Sequence record: MT161459.1
Reading direction: 5' to 3' (one strand)
Length of the DNA stretch: 64,000 bases
Positions within the stretch are counted from its first letter, which is position 1, and each line of letters opens with the position of its first letter. Positions 4,784 through 55,826 of this stretch are shown in pieces. The notes beneath the pieces were generated by a model that saw nothing but the letters and a program-made list of their open reading frames with translations, was not told the origin of the DNA and searched no databases. The position numbers and the translations under genes were made by a program.

Positions 4784-5839
4784 ATGTATTGGTTACTACT
4801 CGTTTTGCCGTTGATGGTTCCGTTCGTCGCGAAGTATGTATTCAAACGGACCTACACGTATCAGGAGATGGCGATCAACTGTGCCGTTGCCATCGCACTA
4901 ACTTCGGTCGTCTACTTTGCTGGGCTGTACCGGAGTATGTACGATACTGAGGTTCTTAGTGGGTTCGTTACCGAGAAGACTCGGGAATGGACGAGCTGTG
5001 AACACAGTTACAAGTGTCGGTGTCGCCAAGTCCGGAGCTGTTCGGGATCCGGCAAGAGCAAGAGTTGTTCGTACCACGAGGAGTGTGATACTTGTTATGA
5101 GCACTCCAATGACTGGGATTGGGATGTCAAGACTACGGTCGGCAACCATACCATCAACCGAGTGGATCGTCGCGGATCGATTGAGCCTCCTCGTTGGACC
5201 GAAGTGACTGTAGGAGAACCAGCTGCCAACACCCACATGTACACCAACTACATCAAGGCAGTTCCAGATAGTCTGTTTGCATACAATCAGAATATCATGG
5301 ACAAGTACAAGGATCAGATCCCGAAGTATCCGGACGTGTACGATTACTATAAGATCAACAGGGTCCTGAACTTCTCAGGTGCAGATACCGGAGAATGGAG
5401 CGACTACCTCAGCCAATCGCTGAAATCGATGGGCAAGGAGAAGCAGGTTAATATCATCGCGATTTTAACTGACAAACCGGTAGACTTTGCAGATGCTCTG
5501 TTCTATAGTTGGGCTGGCGGTAAGAAGAATGACGTCGTGATGGTCTACGGCGTGAAAGAAGGGGTGGTCGAATGGTTCCAAAGTACCTCTGTAGGCAATG
5601 GGATGAACAACCAAGAACTGCACATTACACTCCGTAATGAGTCGATCGGGAAAGCTGTTGATCTGGAGTTGTTGAAGTCTCAGGTCGGCATTATCAACGC
5701 CAAGTTTAATCGTCTTCCGATGGAACAGTTTGAATACCTGAAAGACCAAGTGGAACCTCCAATGTGGGTTCTGATAATGGCCCTGCTTATTGGACTTGGG
5801 TCCAGTCTGGGTGTGGCATACATTTTCGCTAAGGATTAA
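4784..5839 (+). CDS. Inner-membrane protein: two N-terminal TM helices, Cys-rich extracytoplasmic region, alpha/beta domain, C-terminal TM
   Basis: Hydrophobic termini; SCEHSYKCRC...CSYHEECDTCYEH. Confidence 0.8.
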   Translation: MYWLLLVLPLMVPFVAKYVFKRTYTYQEMAINCAVAIALTSVVYFAGLYRSMYDTEVLSGFVTEKTREWTSCEHSYKCRCRQVRSCSGSGKSKSCSYHEECDTCYEHSNDWDWDVKTTVGNHTINRVDRRGSIEPPRWTEVTVGEPAANTHMYTNYIKAVPDSLFAYNQNIMDKYKDQIPKYPDVYDYYKINRVLNFSGADTGEWSDYLSQSLKSMGKEKQVNIIAILTDKPVDFADALFYSWAGGKKNDVVMVYGVKEGVVEWFQSTSVGNGMNNQELHITLRNESIGKAVDLELLKSQVGIINAKFNRLPMEQFEYLKDQVEPPMWVLIMALLIGLGSSLGVAYIFAKD

Positions 5840-5901: not shown

Positions 5902-6465
5902 GTGAATAAAACTATCGTTCTCGTTCTGGTTCTCGTGTTTGGCCTGGTTATTCTGCCGATCGGTGGGTTTGTTGGGATGTACGTCTCCAACGCAAACACT
6001 GCTACTCGGTTTGAGACCAACATCGAGAAGTTCCACAAGGACTCTCAGAACACCCTGAGCGCGTACACCAACAAGATCCGCGACATGGCCCAGATTCCGG
6101 ATATGTACACTGCTGACCTGAAAAAGGTGATCGATGCTACGTTCCAAGGTCGTTACGGTAAGGATGGCTCTAAAGCAGTCACTCAGTTCATGACTGAAAA
6201 CAATCTGCAGTTTGACTCCAGCATGTACAAGAGTCTGCAGGTCGCAATGGAAGCAGGTCGCAATGAGTTCAAGCTGTCCCAGACCAAGAAATTGGATGTG
6301 TGTGGTGGTTATGAGAACCATCGGAACTTCGTAATGAGTGGGTTCTTCGTTACGATGGCAGGTTTCCCGAAGAAAGATATCGACAAGATGTGCGCTATCG
6401 TCCTCGACAAAGAGACCAACAACGCTTTCGAGACTGGTGAGACTAGCTCCATCAAGCTCCGCTAA
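5902..6465 (+). CDS. LemA-like membrane-anchored helical protein
   Basis: AAGGA RBS + GTG 5902; single N-terminal TM then helical domain ending ...GFFVTMAGFP as in LemA-like proteins. Confidence 0.6.
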   Translation: MNKTIVLVLVLVFGLVILPIGGFVGMYVSNANTATRFETNIEKFHKDSQNTLSAYTNKIRDMAQIPDMYTADLKKVIDATFQGRYGKDGSKAVTQFMTENNLQFDSSMYKSLQVAMEAGRNEFKLSQTKKLDVCGGYENHRNFVMSGFFVTMAGFPKKDIDKMCAIVLDKETNNAFETGETSSIKLR

Positions 6466-6468
6466 AAT

Positions 6469-6492
6469 AAATCCCGCTTCGGCGGGATTTTT
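6469..6492 (+). terminator. Rho-independent terminator
   Basis: AAATCCCGC-TTCG-GCGGGATTT-TT. Confidence 0.9.
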
Positions 6493-6494
6493 CG

Positions 6495-6528
6495 TTGTGC
6501 AGCATCGCACGTTATTGGATACTAACGT
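6495..6528 (+). promoter_or_regulatory. Early promoter with inverted repeat around -10
   Basis: TTGTGC-17bp-GATACT; ACGTTA/TAACGT. Confidence 0.55.
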
Positions 6529-6570
6529 CATTGGGTCGACAGACCAACCAAACAGCAGAAGGACACAACC

Positions 6571-6801
6571 ATGAACATCGAACTCATACAGAACTCCAAA
6601 CACGCCAACCTGCTCAACGAAAATGAAGTTGAGATCGCAGTCACCATCGATGGCGCATATACTCGGATTTTCGATGTGTATGGCAAGCCGACTGGTCGTA
6701 AGAATGGTTTTACCCCGACTGGGGCTCTGTCACAACGTGCTATCAAACAATCTGAATTGAAAGCGGTCATGAAGTTCCTGACCGACAACGACCACATTTA
6801 A
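6571..6801 (+). CDS. Hypothetical protein
   Basis: AAGGA RBS; first gene after promoter. Confidence 0.75.
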   Translation: MNIELIQNSKHANLLNENEVEIAVTIDGAYTRIFDVYGKPTGRKNGFTPTGALSQRAIKQSELKAVMKFLTDNDHI

Positions 6802-6812
6802 TCGGAGTTATC

Positions 6813-7244
6813 ATGAAAAACTATCAAGCGTTGATCCTGGGTGGCGTAATAGCTTCCAGCGCGTTCGTTCTGGGAATGAATAGCGTCGAGGTGGTCAAGA
6901 TCCAAGAGACTCCGATCCAAATTACAGACAAGAGACCTATCGATGGTGGTGAGAAGTACAATCCGGAGGCAGTATATGTCGAACAGATCAAGGACTCATT
7001 TGAGGATCTAGAGAATGATATTCTGTCATCAGCTCGAGAAGAATCTGAAATGAGGGATCAGATTAGCGATGTCGGATTTGATCGGTTGATGAAAATCAAC
7101 AACAAGATCGTCGAGAATCGAAAGTTCGTGGTACAACTCCGTTGTCGCTCATACGACAGACGTTACCACTTCGACGACAATCGCGATGCTGTGCTGTACA
7201 AGCAGGCTCAGGTTATTTGTGCTGCTGTTGGCGAACACATCTGA
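6813..7244 (+). CDS. Hypothetical protein with N-terminal signal/TM segment
   Basis: GGAG RBS; hydrophobic N-terminus. Confidence 0.75.
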   Translation: MKNYQALILGGVIASSAFVLGMNSVEVVKIQETPIQITDKRPIDGGEKYNPEAVYVEQIKDSFEDLENDILSSAREESEMRDQISDVGFDRLMKINNKIVENRKFVVQLRCRSYDRRYHFDDNRDAVLYKQAQVICAAVGEHI

Positions 7245-7447
7245 TGTGGGCCATATTCAAAAGGAACGGAGATCTCGTCCGTTCCGGCATTAAAACTGAG
7301 AAGGGAGCGAAGAAAATCGCTAGCCAACGAGGTCATGCTATAGTAGGATTCATTATCGGGCACGATGTATACCTCGTCCAACGTAAACTGAGCTGCATAA
7401 GATCTCAGTCGTGGGCCCGAGAACCTTGGAGGAAAATCCATGTATAG
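7244..7447 (+). CDS. Hypothetical protein
   Basis: ATG overlaps previous stop; MWAIFKRNG... Confidence 0.65.
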   Translation: MWAIFKRNGDLVRSGIKTEKGAKKIASQRGHAIVGFIIGHDVYLVQRKLSCIRSQSWAREPWRKIHV

Positions 7448-7610
7448 TCTCCACCACGGAATCAAAGATTTCGATGGGATAAACAAGTGCCACGTAGTCA
7501 TAGACGGATACTCATACAAAGCAGTGATCCGGATGGTCTACCCAAACCACGTAGTAGCGTTCGTTAACGGCAAGAACGCTATCGTCAAGAAAACCAACAC
7601 ATTCAGATAA
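7440..7610 (+). CDS. Hypothetical 56-aa protein (not in ORF track)
   Basis: GGAGG RBS, ATG 7440, MYSLHHGIKD...KTNTFR-TAA; fills the gap exactly. Confidence 0.7.
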   Translation: MYSLHHGIKDFDGINKCHVVIDGYSYKAVIRMVYPNHVVAFVNGKNAIVKKTNTFR

Positions 7611-8101: not shown

Positions 8102-8586
8102 TCCAGAGTAAGTTTGTGATCGAGTCTGTCTACGCAGCATTCTGCAAACAGACTTCAATCTACCCGCCGACCGTTTTGGTCGGCCCTACTACCAAACAGA
8201 AGGATGAGCAACGGATCATCCAAGGCTGTGAGCCACTGTATAGCTTCTCAAACACACTGCTGTCTGAGACCAGACAGGCTTATTTCGATATCGAAGTGGC
8301 TTATTTGTTCGCGGATAATATCAAGCTACCGTACTTAGCTAAAGTTATCGGTAAGTTTGCGGCGTTGGTGGAGATCGCCTACAAGCAGATGAAGCTGGTG
8401 TACTCCAAGGATCCAATCCTGAAAGAGTACTTCGTCACCGCATTCCCAGATCGTATGGAGGAATATTCAACAGTTGTATTCCACCTTATGATGCAGGATA
8501 CTGGGGGCTCTCAAGAATGCATCGATGCATTCCGAGCTGAATACAAAGAAGTGCAAGCAGCGATGCGAAAGCGTATCGCGAAGTAA
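8098..8586 (+). CDS. Hypothetical protein
   Basis: ATGA overlap; MIQSKFVIE... Confidence 0.7.
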   Translation: MIQSKFVIESVYAAFCKQTSIYPPTVLVGPTTKQKDEQRIIQGCEPLYSFSNTLLSETRQAYFDIEVAYLFADNIKLPYLAKVIGKFAALVEIAYKQMKLVYSKDPILKEYFVTAFPDRMEEYSTVVFHLMMQDTGGSQECIDAFRAEYKEVQAAMRKRIAK

Positions 8587-10200: not shown

Positions 10201-11493
10201 ATGGAATACAATTTTAACGATTATGTTGCAGTGCACGCGGAGATGGATGTTTTGGCCGAAAACAAAGAGGCGATGGCTCTCATCAAGACGTTTGATGGTA
10301 CAGCCAAGAATTCCCGCGGTGCGTTTATCGCGAAAGCAGTTAGCGATCTGGGCATGAACGCAACCACCGCTGGCGCGTACTGGCAGCGTAACAAGAAGTA
10401 TGCAATCAGTCAGGGTGCTGCTGCAGTTATGACTCCGCCAGTCCACAAACCAGCTCGATCAACTAAGGCATCCAACGTCGATGTAGCGTCAGCGGTTACT
10501 GCTAGCGTTGCCGATTGGGGTCGAGTTGGTCAAAAGGCATTGCCGCAGAATGGCGTGACTATGGGCCCCCTAGTCATCGAAACTGGTACAACGACGACGA
10601 AGGCGACTGGTACGTTTTACGGTATCAAGAATGGGACTACGGGCAACTACACTGGGTGGATCATTTTCCCAACCGAAGGGTATGCCAGTAAGATCATAGA
10701 CAATACCCGCCCCGTCGCGCCCTCGATGCCAGTGGATAAAAATCTGAATGACGGTCTACGAGAAAGTATTATGAGAATTGGTAAGGCTGTCGGTATGACG
10801 TCCAGTAGCATGATGGGCGTCATCAAAGCTGCTCACGATGAGTACAAGCGTAATCAAGAAGCCGGTTTCAACGGATCTACAGATCTCGTTGCGCGAGATG
10901 CATGGTCCAAGTCCCTACTGCAAACATATCGCGACTGGGTAAGTAGCGGTCAGAAAGTTCTGAAAATGGAAGGACGTTATCTCGAGAGTCAAGGTGACGG
11001 TTATATGAGCATGGATGGCGGCGGTTATCAGGGTCGTCCATACAAGTTCGGCGCATACAACTCCGGCACATACCGCTTGCTGGGCGTTGTACTCTTCCCG
11101 AAAGAAGGATACGCGTACTACACAGACAAAGATGGTAAACGTTGTCAACCGGCCATCGTAACCAAGGAATTCGCCAAAGAGCTGATTACCAAGGTTCGAA
11201 ATCTGGGCGAGGTACTGGACATTTCACCGGATAGCATGATCTCATCTATCAACGCCACAGCTAATCGGATCGAAGCTGAATCTATAGCTGCGAAGGGAGC
11301 TATAGGTGATGTCAAGAAGTATTGCGCTATGGCAGATTCCATTATCAAGGATCTTCTTGAGCTCGAGAAACTTGCATCCGTGATCAATCCGCACGTCAAG
11401 AACGATGCACTATCTCGCGTCGTCAGCTATCAGTCATCGGAGATGCGCAAGAATCTCACCGCGACCAAGCAGTGGGCTAACGATCTCAAATAA
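10201..11493 (+). CDS. 430-aa protein with internal domain duplication; candidate virion internal protein
   Basis: AAGGA RBS; repeats GWIIFPTEGYA / GVVLFPKEGYA; late promoter upstream. Confidence 0.8.
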   Translation: MEYNFNDYVAVHAEMDVLAENKEAMALIKTFDGTAKNSRGAFIAKAVSDLGMNATTAGAYWQRNKKYAISQGAAAVMTPPVHKPARSTKASNVDVASAVTASVADWGRVGQKALPQNGVTMGPLVIETGTTTTKATGTFYGIKNGTTGNYTGWIIFPTEGYASKIIDNTRPVAPSMPVDKNLNDGLRESIMRIGKAVGMTSSSMMGVIKAAHDEYKRNQEAGFNGSTDLVARDAWSKSLLQTYRDWVSSGQKVLKMEGRYLESQGDGYMSMDGGGYQGRPYKFGAYNSGTYRLLGVVLFPKEGYAYYTDKDGKRCQPAIVTKEFAKELITKVRNLGEVLDISPDSMISSINATANRIEAESIAAKGAIGDVKKYCAMADSIIKDLLELEKLASVINPHVKNDALSRVVSYQSSEMRKNLTATKQWANDLK

Positions 11494-11495
11494 AC

Positions 11496-11519
11496 AAAAC
11501 CTCCTTCGGGAGGTTTTTT
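11496..11519 (+). terminator. Rho-independent terminator
   Basis: AAAACCTCC-TTCG-GGAGGTTTT-TT. Confidence 0.9.
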
Positions 11520-11520
11520 G

Positions 11521-11561
11521 TTGCCTTGCATTTCAGATCATGTAGAATGATCGCATCAACT
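11521..11561 (+). promoter_or_regulatory. Early promoter and shared leader
   Basis: TTGCCT-16bp-TAGAAT; GATCAT/ATGATC IR; AATGATCGCATCAACT identical to 9699-9714. Confidence 0.6.
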
Positions 11562-11575
11562 GAGGAGAAACAACC

Positions 11576-12013
11576 ATGTCCAAAGAATACAGTATCCAAA
11601 CTCTGACTCCAGGTAACATTGATACTCATAAGTGGTATCGCTTTCGAAGTGATATGGCACGCGATCAGTATGTCAGAATGGGGTTTAGCGTGAACCACGC
11701 ACTCGCTAACATCGTTTCGATAGGTAGTAGATTCCGAATCCTGTGTACCAATTCATTTGGAGTAACCGAGATCGTTACTGATCTTGGTCAGAAATTAGCG
11801 TCCGAATCCACTATTATCTGCCATCGCGAGTATTCCCAGTTTGTGACAGACATCGAGATTGAAGTCGAAGAGGATGAGTGCAAGCCGACTAACGCGGACT
11901 ACCTGAGAGCAACTGTGTTCTATCTGACCGATGGCAACGAGCCAGTTGCTCACATGACACTCGCGGACATCTGGACATATTATCAACGCGGTTACAAGGT
12001 AGAAGAGAAATGA
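11576..12013 (+). CDS. Hypothetical protein (paralog family)
   Basis: GAGGAG RBS; KWYRFRS motif. Confidence 0.8.
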   Translation: MSKEYSIQTLTPGNIDTHKWYRFRSDMARDQYVRMGFSVNHALANIVSIGSRFRILCTNSFGVTEIVTDLGQKLASESTIICHREYSQFVTDIEIEVEEDECKPTNADYLRATVFYLTDGNEPVAHMTLADIWTYYQRGYKVEEK

Positions 12014-15782: not shown

Positions 15783-16087
15783 GAATCAAATGGATCCCAG
15801 CTTTGCTTATGATGGGAGCACTCATCGGATGCGCGACGAAGATTGAGCAAGTGCCAGTGGAAGTCACAAAGAGTGTGTACCATCCAAACCGTCCATCTCC
15901 AGTCGAACCGTTTTCTCCCAAGTGGAAAGTGATGGTTGACGAGAACGGCAAGTCGTTTGTATCGATGAGCTATAGCGATTCAGTTCGATATCGCATCTGG
16001 TTAGAGGATGTCAAGCGATACATCCAGAGCCAGAACTCTATTATCTGCGGGTATAGAACCGATCTAAACGAATCGGAATGTAAGTGA
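15779..16087 (+). CDS. pseT.2: Outer-membrane spanin lipoprotein (Rz1-like)
   Basis: GGAGG RBS, GTG 15779; lipobox LIGC; Pro-rich; YI......ICGYRTDLNE..C. Confidence 0.85.
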   Translation: MRIKWIPALLMMGALIGCATKIEQVPVEVTKSVYHPNRPSPVEPFSPKWKVMVDENGKSFVSMSYSDSVRYRIWLEDVKRYIQSQNSIICGYRTDLNESECK

Positions 16088-16108
16088 ACCTCCTTCGGGA
16101 GGTTTTTT
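16087..16108 (+). terminator. Rho-independent terminator
   Basis: AACCTCC-TTCG-GGAGGTT-TTTT. Confidence 0.9.
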
Positions 16109-16163
16109 GTTATCAGCTCGTTGACTTTCTAAAACGCGTTATAAGCGTTTGGGATTCAATCCT

Positions 16164-16355
16164 GTACGATCTATCGGGTTAGTGGTAGGAATGGCGTATA
16201 GCGAGTTCTAGGCCGGTAAAATAGATAGTAATAATAGGTTGACATCCGAAGGATGTTCCTGGAGCGAAGCGACAGGGAGGGGGGACTTATAGAGTCTCTT
16301 AAAGGGTATAAGGAGATTCTATTTCTCCCCCTTCGGGGAGTTCACTACGTTCACT
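16164..16355 (+). repeat. Structured non-coding dispersed element, copy A
   Basis: 16279-16340 matches reverse complement of 54868-54931 except two 1-nt indels; 16164-16202 resembles reverse complement of 54992-55028; TGGAGCGAAGCGACA box at 16261. Confidence 0.9.
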
Positions 16356-16398
16356 ATCCAACCTGTTGACTATCTTCTCGATAGCCGCTAAGCTCATG

Positions 16399-16405
16399 CT
16401 AAATA
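16399..16405 (+). promoter_or_regulatory. Late promoter
   Basis: CTAAATA upstream of the SLT gene. Confidence 0.6.
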
Positions 16406-16458
16406 CGTAACCCACACTATCTTTTCACTAGGACGATACAAGAAATAGAGAGGCCATA

Positions 16459-16995
16459 ATGACCCCCAACCTAAAGAAGATCGGTATCTTCTCATTGCTA
16501 CTGTTGTCAACAACTGTCAATGCAATGCCAACAAAGGAATGTACTTTCCTAAATGAAGATCAGAAACAAGTTGTGACTCGAGCCTACCAGTTAGGCGAAG
16601 ATTCCGACTACGGTATGACTCTTGCTGCCATTGCCCTGACTGAGAGCAAAGCTGGCGAACAACTCATCAACAGAGTGAGTGGCGACTACGGCGTGTTCCA
16701 GAACAATTTGAAAAACACTGTTCGAATGATCGAACAGCGTACCGGATCTAGGATGTCATACCGACAGATCCAAGGACTCAAGAAGAACCTCGTCGCTAAC
16801 ATGGACGAGAGTGGAATGTACGCTCAGATGAATATCGAGTTCTGGGAGCAAGTCCACGGTAAAGAAGCGTGGAGCAAGATCATCGCTTCGTACAACGCGG
16901 GATACAATTACAGCGGATCCAAAGGTCAAAAGTACTTGGCTGAAGTGAAATCCAACTTGAGAAAACTCAAGCACTGTGATTGCATCGGTCAATAA
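16459..16995 (+). CDS. Lytic transglycosylase (SLT fold, T4 Vs.1-like) with signal peptide
   Basis: AAIALTES (catalytic Glu), YGVFQ, ASYNAG; hydrophobic N-terminus. Confidence 0.85.
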   Translation: MTPNLKKIGIFSLLLLSTTVNAMPTKECTFLNEDQKQVVTRAYQLGEDSDYGMTLAAIALTESKAGEQLINRVSGDYGVFQNNLKNTVRMIEQRTGSRMSYRQIQGLKKNLVANMDESGMYAQMNIEFWEQVHGKEAWSKIIASYNAGYNYSGSKGQKYLAEVKSNLRKLKHCDCIGQ

Positions 16996-54824: not shown

Positions 54825-54852
54825 TGTGGTCTCCTTTTAATTTATTTAGCGG

Positions 54853-55028
54853 TGGAGCGTAGCGACACTCCCCGAAGGGGGAGAAATAGAATCTCCTTAT
54901 ACCCTTTAAAGAGACTCTATAAGTCCCCCCTCTACCGACCTACGGTCGGAGATGTCGCTACGCTCCATCCATTTAAACCTTCTATAACCGTCTATACGGA
55001 ATCCCATCACTAACCTGATAGATCGTAC
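54853..55028 (-). repeat. Structured non-coding dispersed element, copy B, with perfect 15-bp terminal inverted repeats
   Basis: TGGAGCGTAGCGACA (54853-54867) and TGTCGCTACGCTCCA (54953-54967) flank a core shared with 16279-16340. Confidence 0.9.
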
Positions 55029-55037
55029 TGATGCTAA

Positions 55038-55826
55038 CTAGAACGCTTCTAGATCATCGAAAGAATCGGGTATAGACAGCTTGTGGGGTTCTACTGGGAA
55101 TACTACTGGATTGACTCCGCCTCCGATGAGGTTATCGAACTCTTCCACGAAGGTATCAGCTTCCGCAGCAATTGCGTTATCCTCGGAATATTCTTCGATA
55201 TTGGTATCGGCACGACCGTCCAACATACGGATTGGGTCCAACTGAGAGTCGAACAGCAGATCTGTAGCGTCGAACTCCGGCTTGAGTTCCTCTCCAGAAT
55301 AAACAAACTTCTGAGCGGTGATTTTGTACTGACTAACTTGACCAGCTTGTAGGAATGGAGCATTCGGTTCCACCCAGATCACCTCAAAGAGACCCTTGCT
55401 CATCGGGAAGAATATCAAGTCCCCTTCTTTAACTACTTCGCCATCGGCCTGTATACTGAATAACTCTGGACTGACTACAAGAGTCATCTCATCATTCACC
55501 TGCATACCGAACTTGCTAAAGAACTCTTGCTGACCGCTAAACCCATCGAAGCTCTCGATATACATAGCAACTCGATACGCTTTCTTGAATTTGGATTGAA
55601 GGTCCTCTCCAAACAGTTTATCGAAGTTGACAAACTCTCTCCGGATATAGAACATTTCAATCCCCTTCATTTGAACCGCTTCCGATACAAGCGATCGAGC
55701 GAGAGCTTGGGTATTTGCGTTGTTGAAGTTATTCACGAACGGATTTGTAATGTGATTGTCGTGGGTATCGTTATAGCCAGACTGATTTTCCAGTCTGGCA
55801 AATAGATGCGAACTTTTCTTGTACAT
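55038..55826 (-). CDS. 14: Neck protein
   Basis: LFARLEN, E.VQM.G.E.FY..REFV..D..FGEDLQSKF, FFSKFG..V.DE. Confidence 0.96.
   Translation of the reverse strand: MYKKSSHLFARLENQSGYNDTHDNHITNPFVNNFNNANTQALARSLVSEAVQMKGIEMFYIRREFVNFDKLFGEDLQSKFKKAYRVAMYIESFDGFSGQQEFFSKFGMQVNDEMTLVVSPELFSIQADGEVVKEGDLIFFPMSKGLFEVIWVEPNAPFLQAGQVSQYKITAQKFVYSGEELKPEFDATDLLFDSQLDPIRMLDGRADTNIEEYSEDNAIAAEADTFVEEFDNLIGGGVNPVVFPVEPHKLSIPDSFDDLEAF

Follow-up and report, generated by a model that had tools for sequence, protein, structure and literature searches.

A hairpin cassette repeated around the genomes of Aeh1-like Aeromonas phages, a candidate start signal for replication or priming

What is the role of a structured non-coding element that recurs in inverted orientation in the genome of a T4-type phage? 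The question was raised by the window analysed here, a stretch of 64,000 nucleotides that corresponds to positions 124001-188000 of the genome of Aeromonas phage Ahp1_CNU-2021 (MT161459.1, 218,317 bp, Straboviridae; hereafter Ahp1). BLAST placed window positions 16100-16420 at genome positions 140100-140420 with 100% identity. An initial annotation of the window, made from the letters alone, had reported two look-alike non-coding boxes, designated here copies A and B, and had listed a replication origin, a recombination site, a mobile repeat and a non-coding RNA among the candidate explanations. The boxes are copies of an ancient, constrained, structure-conserved and regularly spaced cassette, which is common to phages and Aeromonas islands. 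Tentatively, we read this cassette as a single-strand hairpin signal for the start of replication or priming.

Distribution, spacing and orientation of the cassette

Both boxes occur where they had been placed, and their diagnostic patterns are unique in the window: GTACGATCTATC(G/A)GGTTAGTG was found only at 16164-16184 (+) and 55008-55028 (-), and the 20-mer GGGGGGACTTATAGAGTCTC only at 16279 (+) and 54911 (-), with no matches to either in shuffled sequences. Local BLAST aligned copies A and B over 78 nt of the core at 94.9% identity and over 38 nt of the 5' box at 84%. The statement that the element is present twice holds for the window but not for the genome. BLAST and exact patterns, applied to all 218 kb, revealed seven copies (A to G), five of them outside the window. 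These cassettes are about 190-300 bp in size and all are intergenic. Their alignment contains an invariant stretch of about 52 nt, GGGGACTTATAGAGTCTC(T)TTAAAGGGTATAAGGAGATTCTATTTCTCCCCC, set in mosaic flanks: a module with the tri-loop hairpin ACATCC-GAA-GGATGT is present in copies A and D, and one with CGACC-GTA-GGTCG in copies B, C, F, and G. A degenerate 3' arm is common to A and C, while the other five copies have TGTCGCTACGCTCCAC. In some copies, a 15-bp closing stem encloses the core and tri-loop hairpins. The motif CTAAATA, the published late-promoter consensus of phage Aeh1 (PMC1524935), lies within 60 nt downstream in 5 of the 7 copies, A and B included, as the initial annotation had proposed for these two.

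The first lead to other genera was a hairpin upstream of Aeh1 gp15 with the same loop and different stems. BLAST with the 166-bp spacer of Aeh1 that contains it gave matches at 8 places in Aeh1, 9 in Ah1 and avDM12-TAAL, 8 in phiAS5 and phiWae14, and 6-7 in PX29 and the AsFcp phages. The whole genomes of Aeh1 and PX29 were then searched with a covariance model built from the core, which detected 8 and 7 copies, respectively (Table 1). Several copies were present in every Aeh1-like T4-type Aeromonas phage checked. The conservation in Straboviridae relatives that the initial annotation had envisaged was borne out by 7-8 copies or 6-9 BLAST places in each, together with covariation in the core. 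A pattern search of IMG/VR with the loop motif matched only Aeh1, Ah1, and phiAS5 and revealed no further lineages.

Five sites are syntenic in Ahp1, Aeh1, and PX29, namely the gp49-proximal site, the site beside a gene for a 1,200-aa protein, gp26|gp54, the site upstream of gp15, and pseT.2|vs.1. The genera sharing these sites have core genes that are only about 68% identical. The copy upstream of the gp15-gp16-gp17 (terminase) genes is kept in all four lineages compared. Lineage-specific sites are those of copies E and F in Ahp1 and those at gp47 and ndd in Aeh1 and PX29.

On the circular map of Ahp1, neighbouring copies are separated by 37.6, 29.3, 25.1, 30.8, 38.6, 28.4, and 28.4 kb, that is, by roughly 30 kb. 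If seven points were placed at random, so large a minimum gap would arise with a probability of 5e-5; for Aeh1, with a tandem pair counted once, this test gave 2.6e-4, and for PX29 0.011. The sites that are not orthologous (E and F; gp47 and ndd) still fill the large intervals, and the spacing is kept. This regularity is the observation that explanations other than a start signal handle least well.

Orientation is looser. The cassette is co-oriented with its flanking genes at 7/7 sites in Ahp1, where every copy points the same way as the downstream gene, at 5/8 in Aeh1, and at 5/7 in PX29 (17/22 in total). The remaining copies, three in Aeh1 and two in PX29, lie antisense to their neighbouring genes. 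At the gp49-proximal and vs.1 sites, the orientation in Ahp1 is opposite to that in Aeh1 and PX29, and at the ndd site Aeh1 and PX29 differ in the same way. These inversions affect the whole unit and are not confined to the core. That orthologous sites flip argues against an obligate element embedded in mRNA. A put-type antiterminator or RNase III site, which is always sense in its operon, was rejected on the same 3/8 and 2/7 antisense copies.

These data bear on RNA-level punctuation, the explanation in which a hairpin in read-through or operon transcripts would process, stabilise or insulate RNA between a terminator and the next, often late, promoter, after the fashion of REP elements or the RNase III sites of T7. 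It accommodates the co-orientation with the downstream gene, the terminators directly ahead of copies A, C, and F and of the island copies, the CTAAATA motifs that follow most Ahp1 copies, the strong RNA folds and the tolerance of the helix for G.U pairs. It leaves the 30-kb spacing unexplained, and 5 of the 15 Aeh1 and PX29 copies are antisense at sites some of which have flipped between orthologues. The core also lacks even those substitutions that would be neutral for pairing (see below), which suggests more than a structural need, and matches no Rfam family. We consider punctuation of this kind somewhat unlikely.

The initial annotation had also suggested that recombination between inverted copies would invert the intervening DNA. 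On metagenome contig L017 (OERK01000279.1, about 11250-11710, - strand), the upstream flank of copy C is joined through a cassette to the downstream flank of copy B, at the start of gp15. This junction is of the expected kind, but it may be an assembly chimera. Two further contigs, L020 and L024, end inside the repeat.

Several details of individual sites were noted in Aeh1 and PX29. At gp26|gp54, Aeh1 has tandem cassettes 170 bp apart (L038 20975-21206, genome 119,975-120,206), and Ahp1 and PX29 have one each. The rnh|gene 34 spacer of PX29 (L063 47523-47620 (-), ~197.2 kb) gave a weak match with 20 bits, an E value of 0.05 and a 40-nt loop insertion, which may be a decayed copy. Two small annotated reading frames of Aeh1, Aeh1p059 (L036 49489-49671) and Aeh1p285 (L039 38549-38653), lie atop cassettes on the opposite strand and are probably annotation artefacts, not genes. 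Beside tk, Aeh1 and PX29 encode proteins of ~480-530 aa annotated as 'RNA-binding protein' (Aeh1p164, L038 261-1841; PX29 gp326, L061 36469-37899).

Structure and constraint of the core hairpin

The helix analysis drew on an alignment of 26 copies, taken from four phage lineages and three islands, and supported one helix with 19 positions: 87.4% of its cells are paired, compared with 43-65% when the partners are slid. Changes on both sides occur at 9 of the 19 pairs, and none of 500 shuffles reached the observed covariation score. For example, pair 11-53 is A-U in Ahp1, C-G in Aeh1, and G-C in PX29, and pairs 7-57, 8-56, and 10-54 alternate between G-C and A-U. The 3x3 internal loop of the Ahp1 hairpin is fully paired in Aeh1, PX29, and island L057, and position 20-44 is non-Watson-Crick in every lineage (G.U, U.U or U.C). 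The terminal loop is conserved, 14-15 nt long and A/T-rich, and keeps TTAAAG and TATAAG. Helix cells include 40 G.T and 11 A.C combinations; therefore, one strand folds better than the other.

This comparison replaces the structure originally drawn for the core, of whose three nested hairpins none is conserved. The nested hairpins CTTATA/TATAAG and GGAGA/TCTCC are non-complementary in Aeh1, phiAS5, and PX29, and one long hairpin is supported instead (arms in Table 1). The outer parts fared better. The perfect 15-bp inverted repeat of copy B, the degenerate 3' arm of copy A and the tri-loop hairpins of both were confirmed, and in copies F and G the stem of the copy B tri-loop is replaced by TCGACC...GGTCGA, a closing pair changed on both sides. 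The 5' limit required revision, since similarity begins about 35 nt further upstream with a TATAAG-type box; the remaining parts are as described. The upstream similarity takes in the preceding terminator in copies A and C and, in variant form, in F. The sequence of the 5' box and spacer of copy A (16164-16241) is conserved, and no helix is well supported there. Compared with shuffled sequences, the folding energies of the single strand were -87.8 kcal/mol for copy B (z -8.6) and -69.6 kcal/mol for copy A (z -3.7).

Independent small RNA genes, each with its own promoter and acting in trans as decoy or regulator, would be expected to be highly structured, and several copies with a conserved loop could offer a recognition surface; the TATAAG-type box conserved upstream would also fit. 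This box is absent from copy E and the Aeh1-type copies, and a scan found no sigma-70-type promoter or terminator bounding the element. Such genes would leave the spacing unexplained as well and have no Rfam match, and we regard them as very unlikely. The search of Rfam 15 gave no match at the gathering threshold in the window and, with permissive settings, only chance-level matches (E >0.03, with scores far short of the gathering threshold) at copies A and B, an Aeh1 copy and the islands. ARAGORN found no tRNA or tmRNA. A coding core was discarded, as two frames contain stops and the loop indel shifts the third.

The pace of change was estimated from nine metagenome contigs that carry orthologous loci from at least one close relative of Ahp1, with all seven sites represented. 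In the seven orthologous pairs, the core displays 0 substitutions in 351 aligned bases, whereas the rest of the cassette and the spacer display 53/878 upstream and 22/319 downstream (6-7%). At the flank rate, about 22 core changes would be expected. These counts point to a core that, measured against the flanks of the same element, is under strong purifying constraint; within the core, only the loop T indel and the lengths of G/C runs vary. The 3' arm of copy C is unlike that of its orthologue on contig L023, which has the majority variant. Gene conversion among copies is therefore indicated.

Mosaic flanks and variants that are common to non-orthologous copies, as in the 3' arm of copy C, would also be expected of a selfish or neutral palindromic repeat, MITE- (miniature inverted-repeat transposable element), REP- (repetitive extragenic palindrome) or PeSL-like or left as debris of homing endonucleases, which would spread and be homogenised through the very active T4-type recombination system and have no function for the phage. 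The flips in place, the tandem pair of Aeh1 and the occurrence of the element in unrelated Aeromonas elements are in line with such a repeat, and so is the presence of CapR-type zinc-finger genes beside copy E and the Aeh1 gp15 copy, together with the Ahp1 gp14|gp15 site, which has the cassette without such a gene. CapR is the zinc-finger DNA-binding domain of T5orf172-type homing endonucleases (PMC10055350). Nevertheless, five sites are kept across genera, copy number is steady at 7-9, the spacing is regular and the core is constrained. No inverted repeats at the ends and no target-site duplication were found, and a scan of species-representative bacterial genomes did not detect the core. A functionless repeat is unlikely on this evidence, and the suggestion of a MITE-like element in the initial annotation is correspondingly weakened.

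The MITE itself was rejected on further grounds: the 15-bp arms of copy B are internal, with the 5' box outside them, copies A, C, E, and F lack them or have them in degenerate form, and no direct repeat flanks A or B. A host-derived repeat was also rejected: when one genome for each bacterial species was scanned with a 19-mer, the only matches were seven chance-like ones in Bacteroidota and Fusobacteria. The CapR homology domains were found in a scan of two reverse-strand genes, AHP1_1431 (L003 34333-35277 (-)), which adjoins copy E, and Aeh1p224 (L006 1913-2518 (-)), which sits between gp14 and the gp15 copy. Similarly placed reverse-strand reading frames of similar size are present in phiAS5 (L007 1906-2601) and PX29 (L008 2581-3195).

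A further explanation makes the cassette a DNA binding or loading site that does not initiate synthesis, such as an enhancer-like entry site for the gp45 sliding clamp that serves late promoters close by, a topoisomerase or nucleoid-organising site, or a terminase site copied by islands for their own packaging. Most co-oriented copies have a late promoter directly downstream, a factor with a limited tracking distance along DNA would be in keeping with the regular spacing, and the copy just upstream of gp15-gp16-gp17 (terminase) is conserved in four lineages. Furthermore, where a cis site is a packaging signal, satellites usually have it in exactly the form of their helpers, as established for P2/P4 cos. 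Covariation for pairing within one strand and the asymmetry between strands are unexpected for a plain double-stranded site, however, and the antisense copies are without a downstream CTAAATA. Neither T4-type late promoters nor T4-type packaging are known to require a specific upstream site. A site of this kind is improbable in our assessment.

Table 1. Parts of the two window copies (window positions) and cassette copies in three phage genomes (genome positions)
Feature	Position	Strand	Description
Copy A terminator	16086..16105	+	Intrinsic hairpin GAACCTCCTTCGGGAGGTTT and T run, ahead of the cassette
Copy A 5' extension	16128..16163	+	Conserved (C/T)GTATAAGCG-type box; common to most copies and to islands L056 and L057
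Copy A 5' box and A/D-type spacer	16164..16241	+	GTACGATCTATCGGGTTAG...TATAG...ATAGATAG
Copy A GAA tri-loop hairpin	16242..16256	+	ACATCC-GAA-GGATGT; holds the mini-hairpin motif CCGAAGG (PMC13037366)
Copy A 5' arm box	16260..16274	+	TGGAGCGAAGCGACA; holds the mini-hairpin motif GCGAAGC
Copy A core hairpin	16280..16331	+	Arms 16280-16298 and 16313-16331; loop TTAAAGGGTATAAG at 16299-16312; covariance model 76.1 bits
Copy A 3' end	16332..16355	+	TTCGGGGAG, then degenerate 3' arm TTCACTACGTTCACT (16341-16355)
Copy A downstream promoters	16366..16405	+	TTGACT-17 nt-TAAGCT (16366-16394), then CTAAATA (16399-16405)
Copy B 5' extension	55029..55060	-	GATCTAGAAGCGTTCTAGTTAGCATCA; overlaps last codons and stop of gp14 (55040-55038)
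Copy B 5' box	54968..55028	-	GTACGATCTATCAGGTTAG...CCGTATAGACGG...TATAGAAGGTTTAAATGGA
Copy B 5' arm	54953..54967	-	TGGAGCGTAGCGACA; perfect complement of the 3' arm
Copy B GTA tri-loop hairpin	54935..54949	-	CCGACC-GTA-GGTCGG
Copy B core hairpin	54877..54929	-	Arms 54929-54911 and 54895-54877; loop TTTAAAGGGTATAAG at 54910-54896; covariance model 79.9 bits
Copy B 3' end	54853..54876	-	TTCGGGGAG, then 3' arm TGTCGCTACGCTCCA (54867-54853)
Copy B late-promoter motif	54843..54849	-	CTAAATA, 19 nt ahead of the gp15 ATG (54824)
Ahp1 copies	17.4 (+), 55.0 (+), 84.3 (-), 109.5 (-), 140.3 (+, A), 178.9 (-, B), 207.3 (+) kb		Seven copies
Aeh1 copies	22.4 (-), 49.6 (+), 90.0 (-), 120.0/120.2 (-), 148.9 (+), 187.1 (+), 230.8 (+) kb		Eight copies, covariance model
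PX29 copies	22.2 (-), 38.9 (+), 77.0 (-), 106.1 (-), 135.5 (+), 175.5 (+), 219.2 (reported -) kb		Seven copies, covariance model

Copy A is preceded by a pseT.2/Rz1-like gene and followed by a vs.1-like gene, which starts at 16459, downstream of the promoters; both genes are on the + strand. Copy B occupies the spacer that separates gp14, the gene of the neck protein, from gp15; these two genes are on the - strand. Given the overlap in Table 1, the C-terminal end of Ahp1 gp14 may be encoded by the cassette. The sigma-70-like promoter TTGACT-17 nt-TAAGCT downstream of copy A was recognised by eye, as the promoter scan requires a T at the end of the second hexamer; it lies outside the conserved part. 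The terminator sequence of copy A, CCTCCTTCGGGAGGTTT(T/C)CTTTTATC, is also present ahead of copy C and the island copies, and a variant of it ahead of F.

Aeromonas islands with the cassette

The cassette is not confined to phage genomes. A 52-nt core identical to that of Ahp1, with arm boxes, was found in non-coding regions of 1.2-1.4 kb in Aeromonas islands. On IMG/VR contig L009, the exact core and arm boxes lie in a 1.3-kb region free of open reading frames (ORFs) beside a gene for a large serine recombinase. Protein look-ups revealed islands of this type integrated in bacterial chromosomes (L026; L027 = GCA_036990685.1). Host genes are followed there by the integrase gene, the non-coding region with the core, about 14 ORFans (ORFs without known relatives), and then, in this order, homologues of T4 gp48 (PF11091, tube cap), a Gp23/gp24-family capsid protein, and a gp19-type tube protein, with the gene of an RNase_T exonuclease after them. 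The island also carries a gene for a DUF2971 protein. Its estimated size is roughly 20 kb (L026 5976-20915; also L032 from Logan ERR1216281_91, L034, and L028 from IMG 3300005076); L034 is from the same assembly as L027, and L009 from the same IMG dataset as L028.

In tblastn against 50,697 phage records, the Gp23-family protein of the island was most similar to gp24 of Ahp1 (29.8% identity), and the 160-aa and 304-aa ORFans gave no match. Named homologues of the 304-aa ORFan were found only in Aeromonas, the close ones in A. hydrophila, plus one T4-like metagenome contig (L058 896-1873, Logan SRR14611556_340; 50% identity). On this contig, the homologue adjoins an endonuclease VII-type gene and nrdAB, which is also the neighbourhood of Ahp1 copy D; a core was not detected over the 7.9 kb examined. 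An AlphaFold model of the ORFan was weak (pLDDT 56) and gave no fold match at E <=0.001.

Two prophage-like regions of A. salmonicida, L056 and L057, encode homologues of the ~300-aa ORFan that are again preceded by a 1.4-kb non-coding region. The latter contains, in this order, a terminator, an Ahp1-type 5' box, GNA tri-loop hairpins, TGGAGCGTAGCGACA, the core (66.7 bits in L056 and 40.7 bits in L057), TTATGCACA motifs, direct repeats, and CTAAATA. The TTATGCACA motifs fit the DnaA-box consensus, and the direct repeats alongside them are short. The region of L009 runs on into TCAAAGGTGCCCCCTA iterons. By this content, the non-coding regions look like replication-control regions. The two strands of a 700-nt island region fold equally well (z -7.9 and -8.7), and no strand information is gained from it. 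A serine-integrase attachment site was dismissed as an identity for the core: in L026/L027, it is internal (8260-8320), about 750 nt past the integrase gene (5976-7508) and away from the host border.

The late-promoter-like CTAAATA of the A. salmonicida regions lies upstream of the ~300-aa ORFan gene (L056 ~5790-5800 and L057 ~5795-5805), and in L009 ATAAATA is present at ~7195 (- strand), upstream of a 175-aa ORF that precedes the ORFan. These motifs suggest that an infecting T4-type phage may activate chromosomal genes through its late transcription machinery. The island looks like an undescribed satellite of T4-type Aeromonas phages. In common with satellite/helper systems (P4/P2 cos, PICI packaging sites, PLE/ICP1), it holds an exact copy of a non-coding sequence of the presumed helper, and the large serine recombinase, the many ORFans and the few helper-type structural genes are traits of such satellites. 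Unlike in those systems, the shared site is away from the genome end and is no known packaging signal, and the tie to a helper comes from sequence comparison.

The cassette as a candidate start signal

The reading as a replication or priming start is favoured because of the regular spacing, the loose orientation, the island context that resembles an origin and the presence of mini-hairpin motifs of the ssi (single-strand initiation) type. On the sense strand, each copy has GCGAAGC or GCGTAGC, plus CCGAAGG or CCGTAGG. DNA mini-hairpins of the GCGNAGC/CCGNAGG kind occur at the complementary-strand origin of G4, at ssiA of RSF1010 and in the hairpin promoters of N4 (PMC13037366). The proposal of an origin or ssDNA-initiation signal in the initial annotation gains from these four lines of evidence, although they are no proof of an origin; the likeness of TAGCGA to the CS-6 box of ssoA, which it had also invoked, is too short to weigh.

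According to this reading, the cassette would work in cis as a folded single strand and would mark the start of DNA synthesis or of recombination-dependent replication, by priming or by helicase loading, in a mode likened to the ssi signals of plasmids and ssDNA phages. Its copies would give the phage start points at regular intervals around a circularly permuted genome. The islands, which carry the core and the boxes, would use the replication machinery of an infecting Ahp1-like phage.

In its working the cassette may be closest to ssi signals, and in appearance to a REP- or PeSL-type intergenic repeat. In G4 (complementary-strand origin) and RSF1010 (ssiA/ssiB), ssi signals consist of stable hairpins clustered on one strand, with mini-hairpins of the GCGNAGC or CCGAAGG type (PMC13037366). 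They are located within or beside origin regions, as is the cassette in islands, and their orientation sets the direction of synthesis rather than that of transcription. The cassette likewise has hairpins with mini-hairpins of the GCGNAGC/CCGNAGG type on one strand, which the wobble asymmetry favours. It differs from ssi signals in its larger size, in the long hairpin with an A/T loop, which has no counterpart among them, and in its seven dispersed copies in a dsDNA phage of 218 kb; the link to a primase or initiator is a prediction, and priming is proposed by analogy.

PeSLs of RB49/phi1-type T4 phages (PMC2839356) are intergenic stem-loop repeats, too, often with polyG/polyC arms; they serve as substrates of recombination between copies and adjoin terminators or promoters. 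They number about 50 per genome, are clustered in hyperplastic regions upstream of ORFans, measure up to ~100 bp and contain a consensus sigma-70 promoter. By contrast, the cassette has 7-9 evenly spaced copies, which occur also in core late clusters (gp14|gp15, gp54|gp26, and tail-fibre genes). Its identity with a PeSL was rejected, as the promoter scan found no sigma-70-type site inside copy A or B. REP/BIME and ERIC elements share with the cassette imperfect intergenic palindromes, mostly co-oriented with transcription, a conserved structure and homogenisation; they differ in being bacterial, irregularly spaced and present in hundreds of copies.

The origins ori(uvsY) and ori(34) of T4 are multiple cis-acting start sites in a T4-type genome, and an infecting phage replicates plasmids that carry one of its origins, a parallel to the piracy proposed here for islands. 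Those origins consist of a MotA-dependent middle promoter and an unwinding element and have no common hairpin cassette. An origin of that type was rejected for the cassette: copies A and B have no MotA box, and no cassette copy is located at uvsY. In the rnh|gene 34 spacer, only PX29 has the weak, degenerate 20-bit match described above.

Several points weigh against a start signal. The three spacing tests are not independent, as five of the sites are common by descent. The co-orientation bias of 17/22 remains, and the position of several copies between a terminator and a late promoter suits a role at the RNA level. No more than four or five independent changes underlie the wobble asymmetry. 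Across the entire window, GCGNAGC and CCGNAGG show no enrichment (37 and 30 occurrences against an expectation of 31), and the motif argument therefore rests on few occurrences per copy. No DnaA box was found at copy A or B, and no MotA box (TGCTTNA) within 420 nt around copy A or 350 nt around copy B, and the known origins of T4 look different. Finally, GC skew displays no saw-tooth at copies C and D, which lie in a uniformly transcribed region; such a signal is unexpected in a phage that replicates mainly by recombination.

The wider proposal is that about seven regularly spaced single-strand hairpin signals organise Aeh1-like genomes as starts of replication or priming, and that islands, one of them satellite-like with homologues of T4-type capsid-vertex, tail-tube, and tube-cap proteins, copy the signal for replication by the phage. 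We hold it to be possible but doubtful.

The cassette is mentioned neither in the Aeh1 genome paper nor in a review of T4 relatives, and regular spacing has, as far as we are aware, been reported for no other non-coding repeat of phages. Metagenome assemblies break or are mis-joined at its repeats, which could also drive inversions. Its sequence also leads to Aeromonas islands that resemble satellites of T4-type phages; we found none with such helpers described in the literature. Replication origins have been mapped in T4 itself and, as far as we know, in none of its relatives. The cassette offers a conserved, countable and easily deleted set of candidate origins in four genera, which makes the question of origins directly testable. 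If the proposed reading is true, these copies would make up the first origin network to be defined by sequence in any relative of T4.

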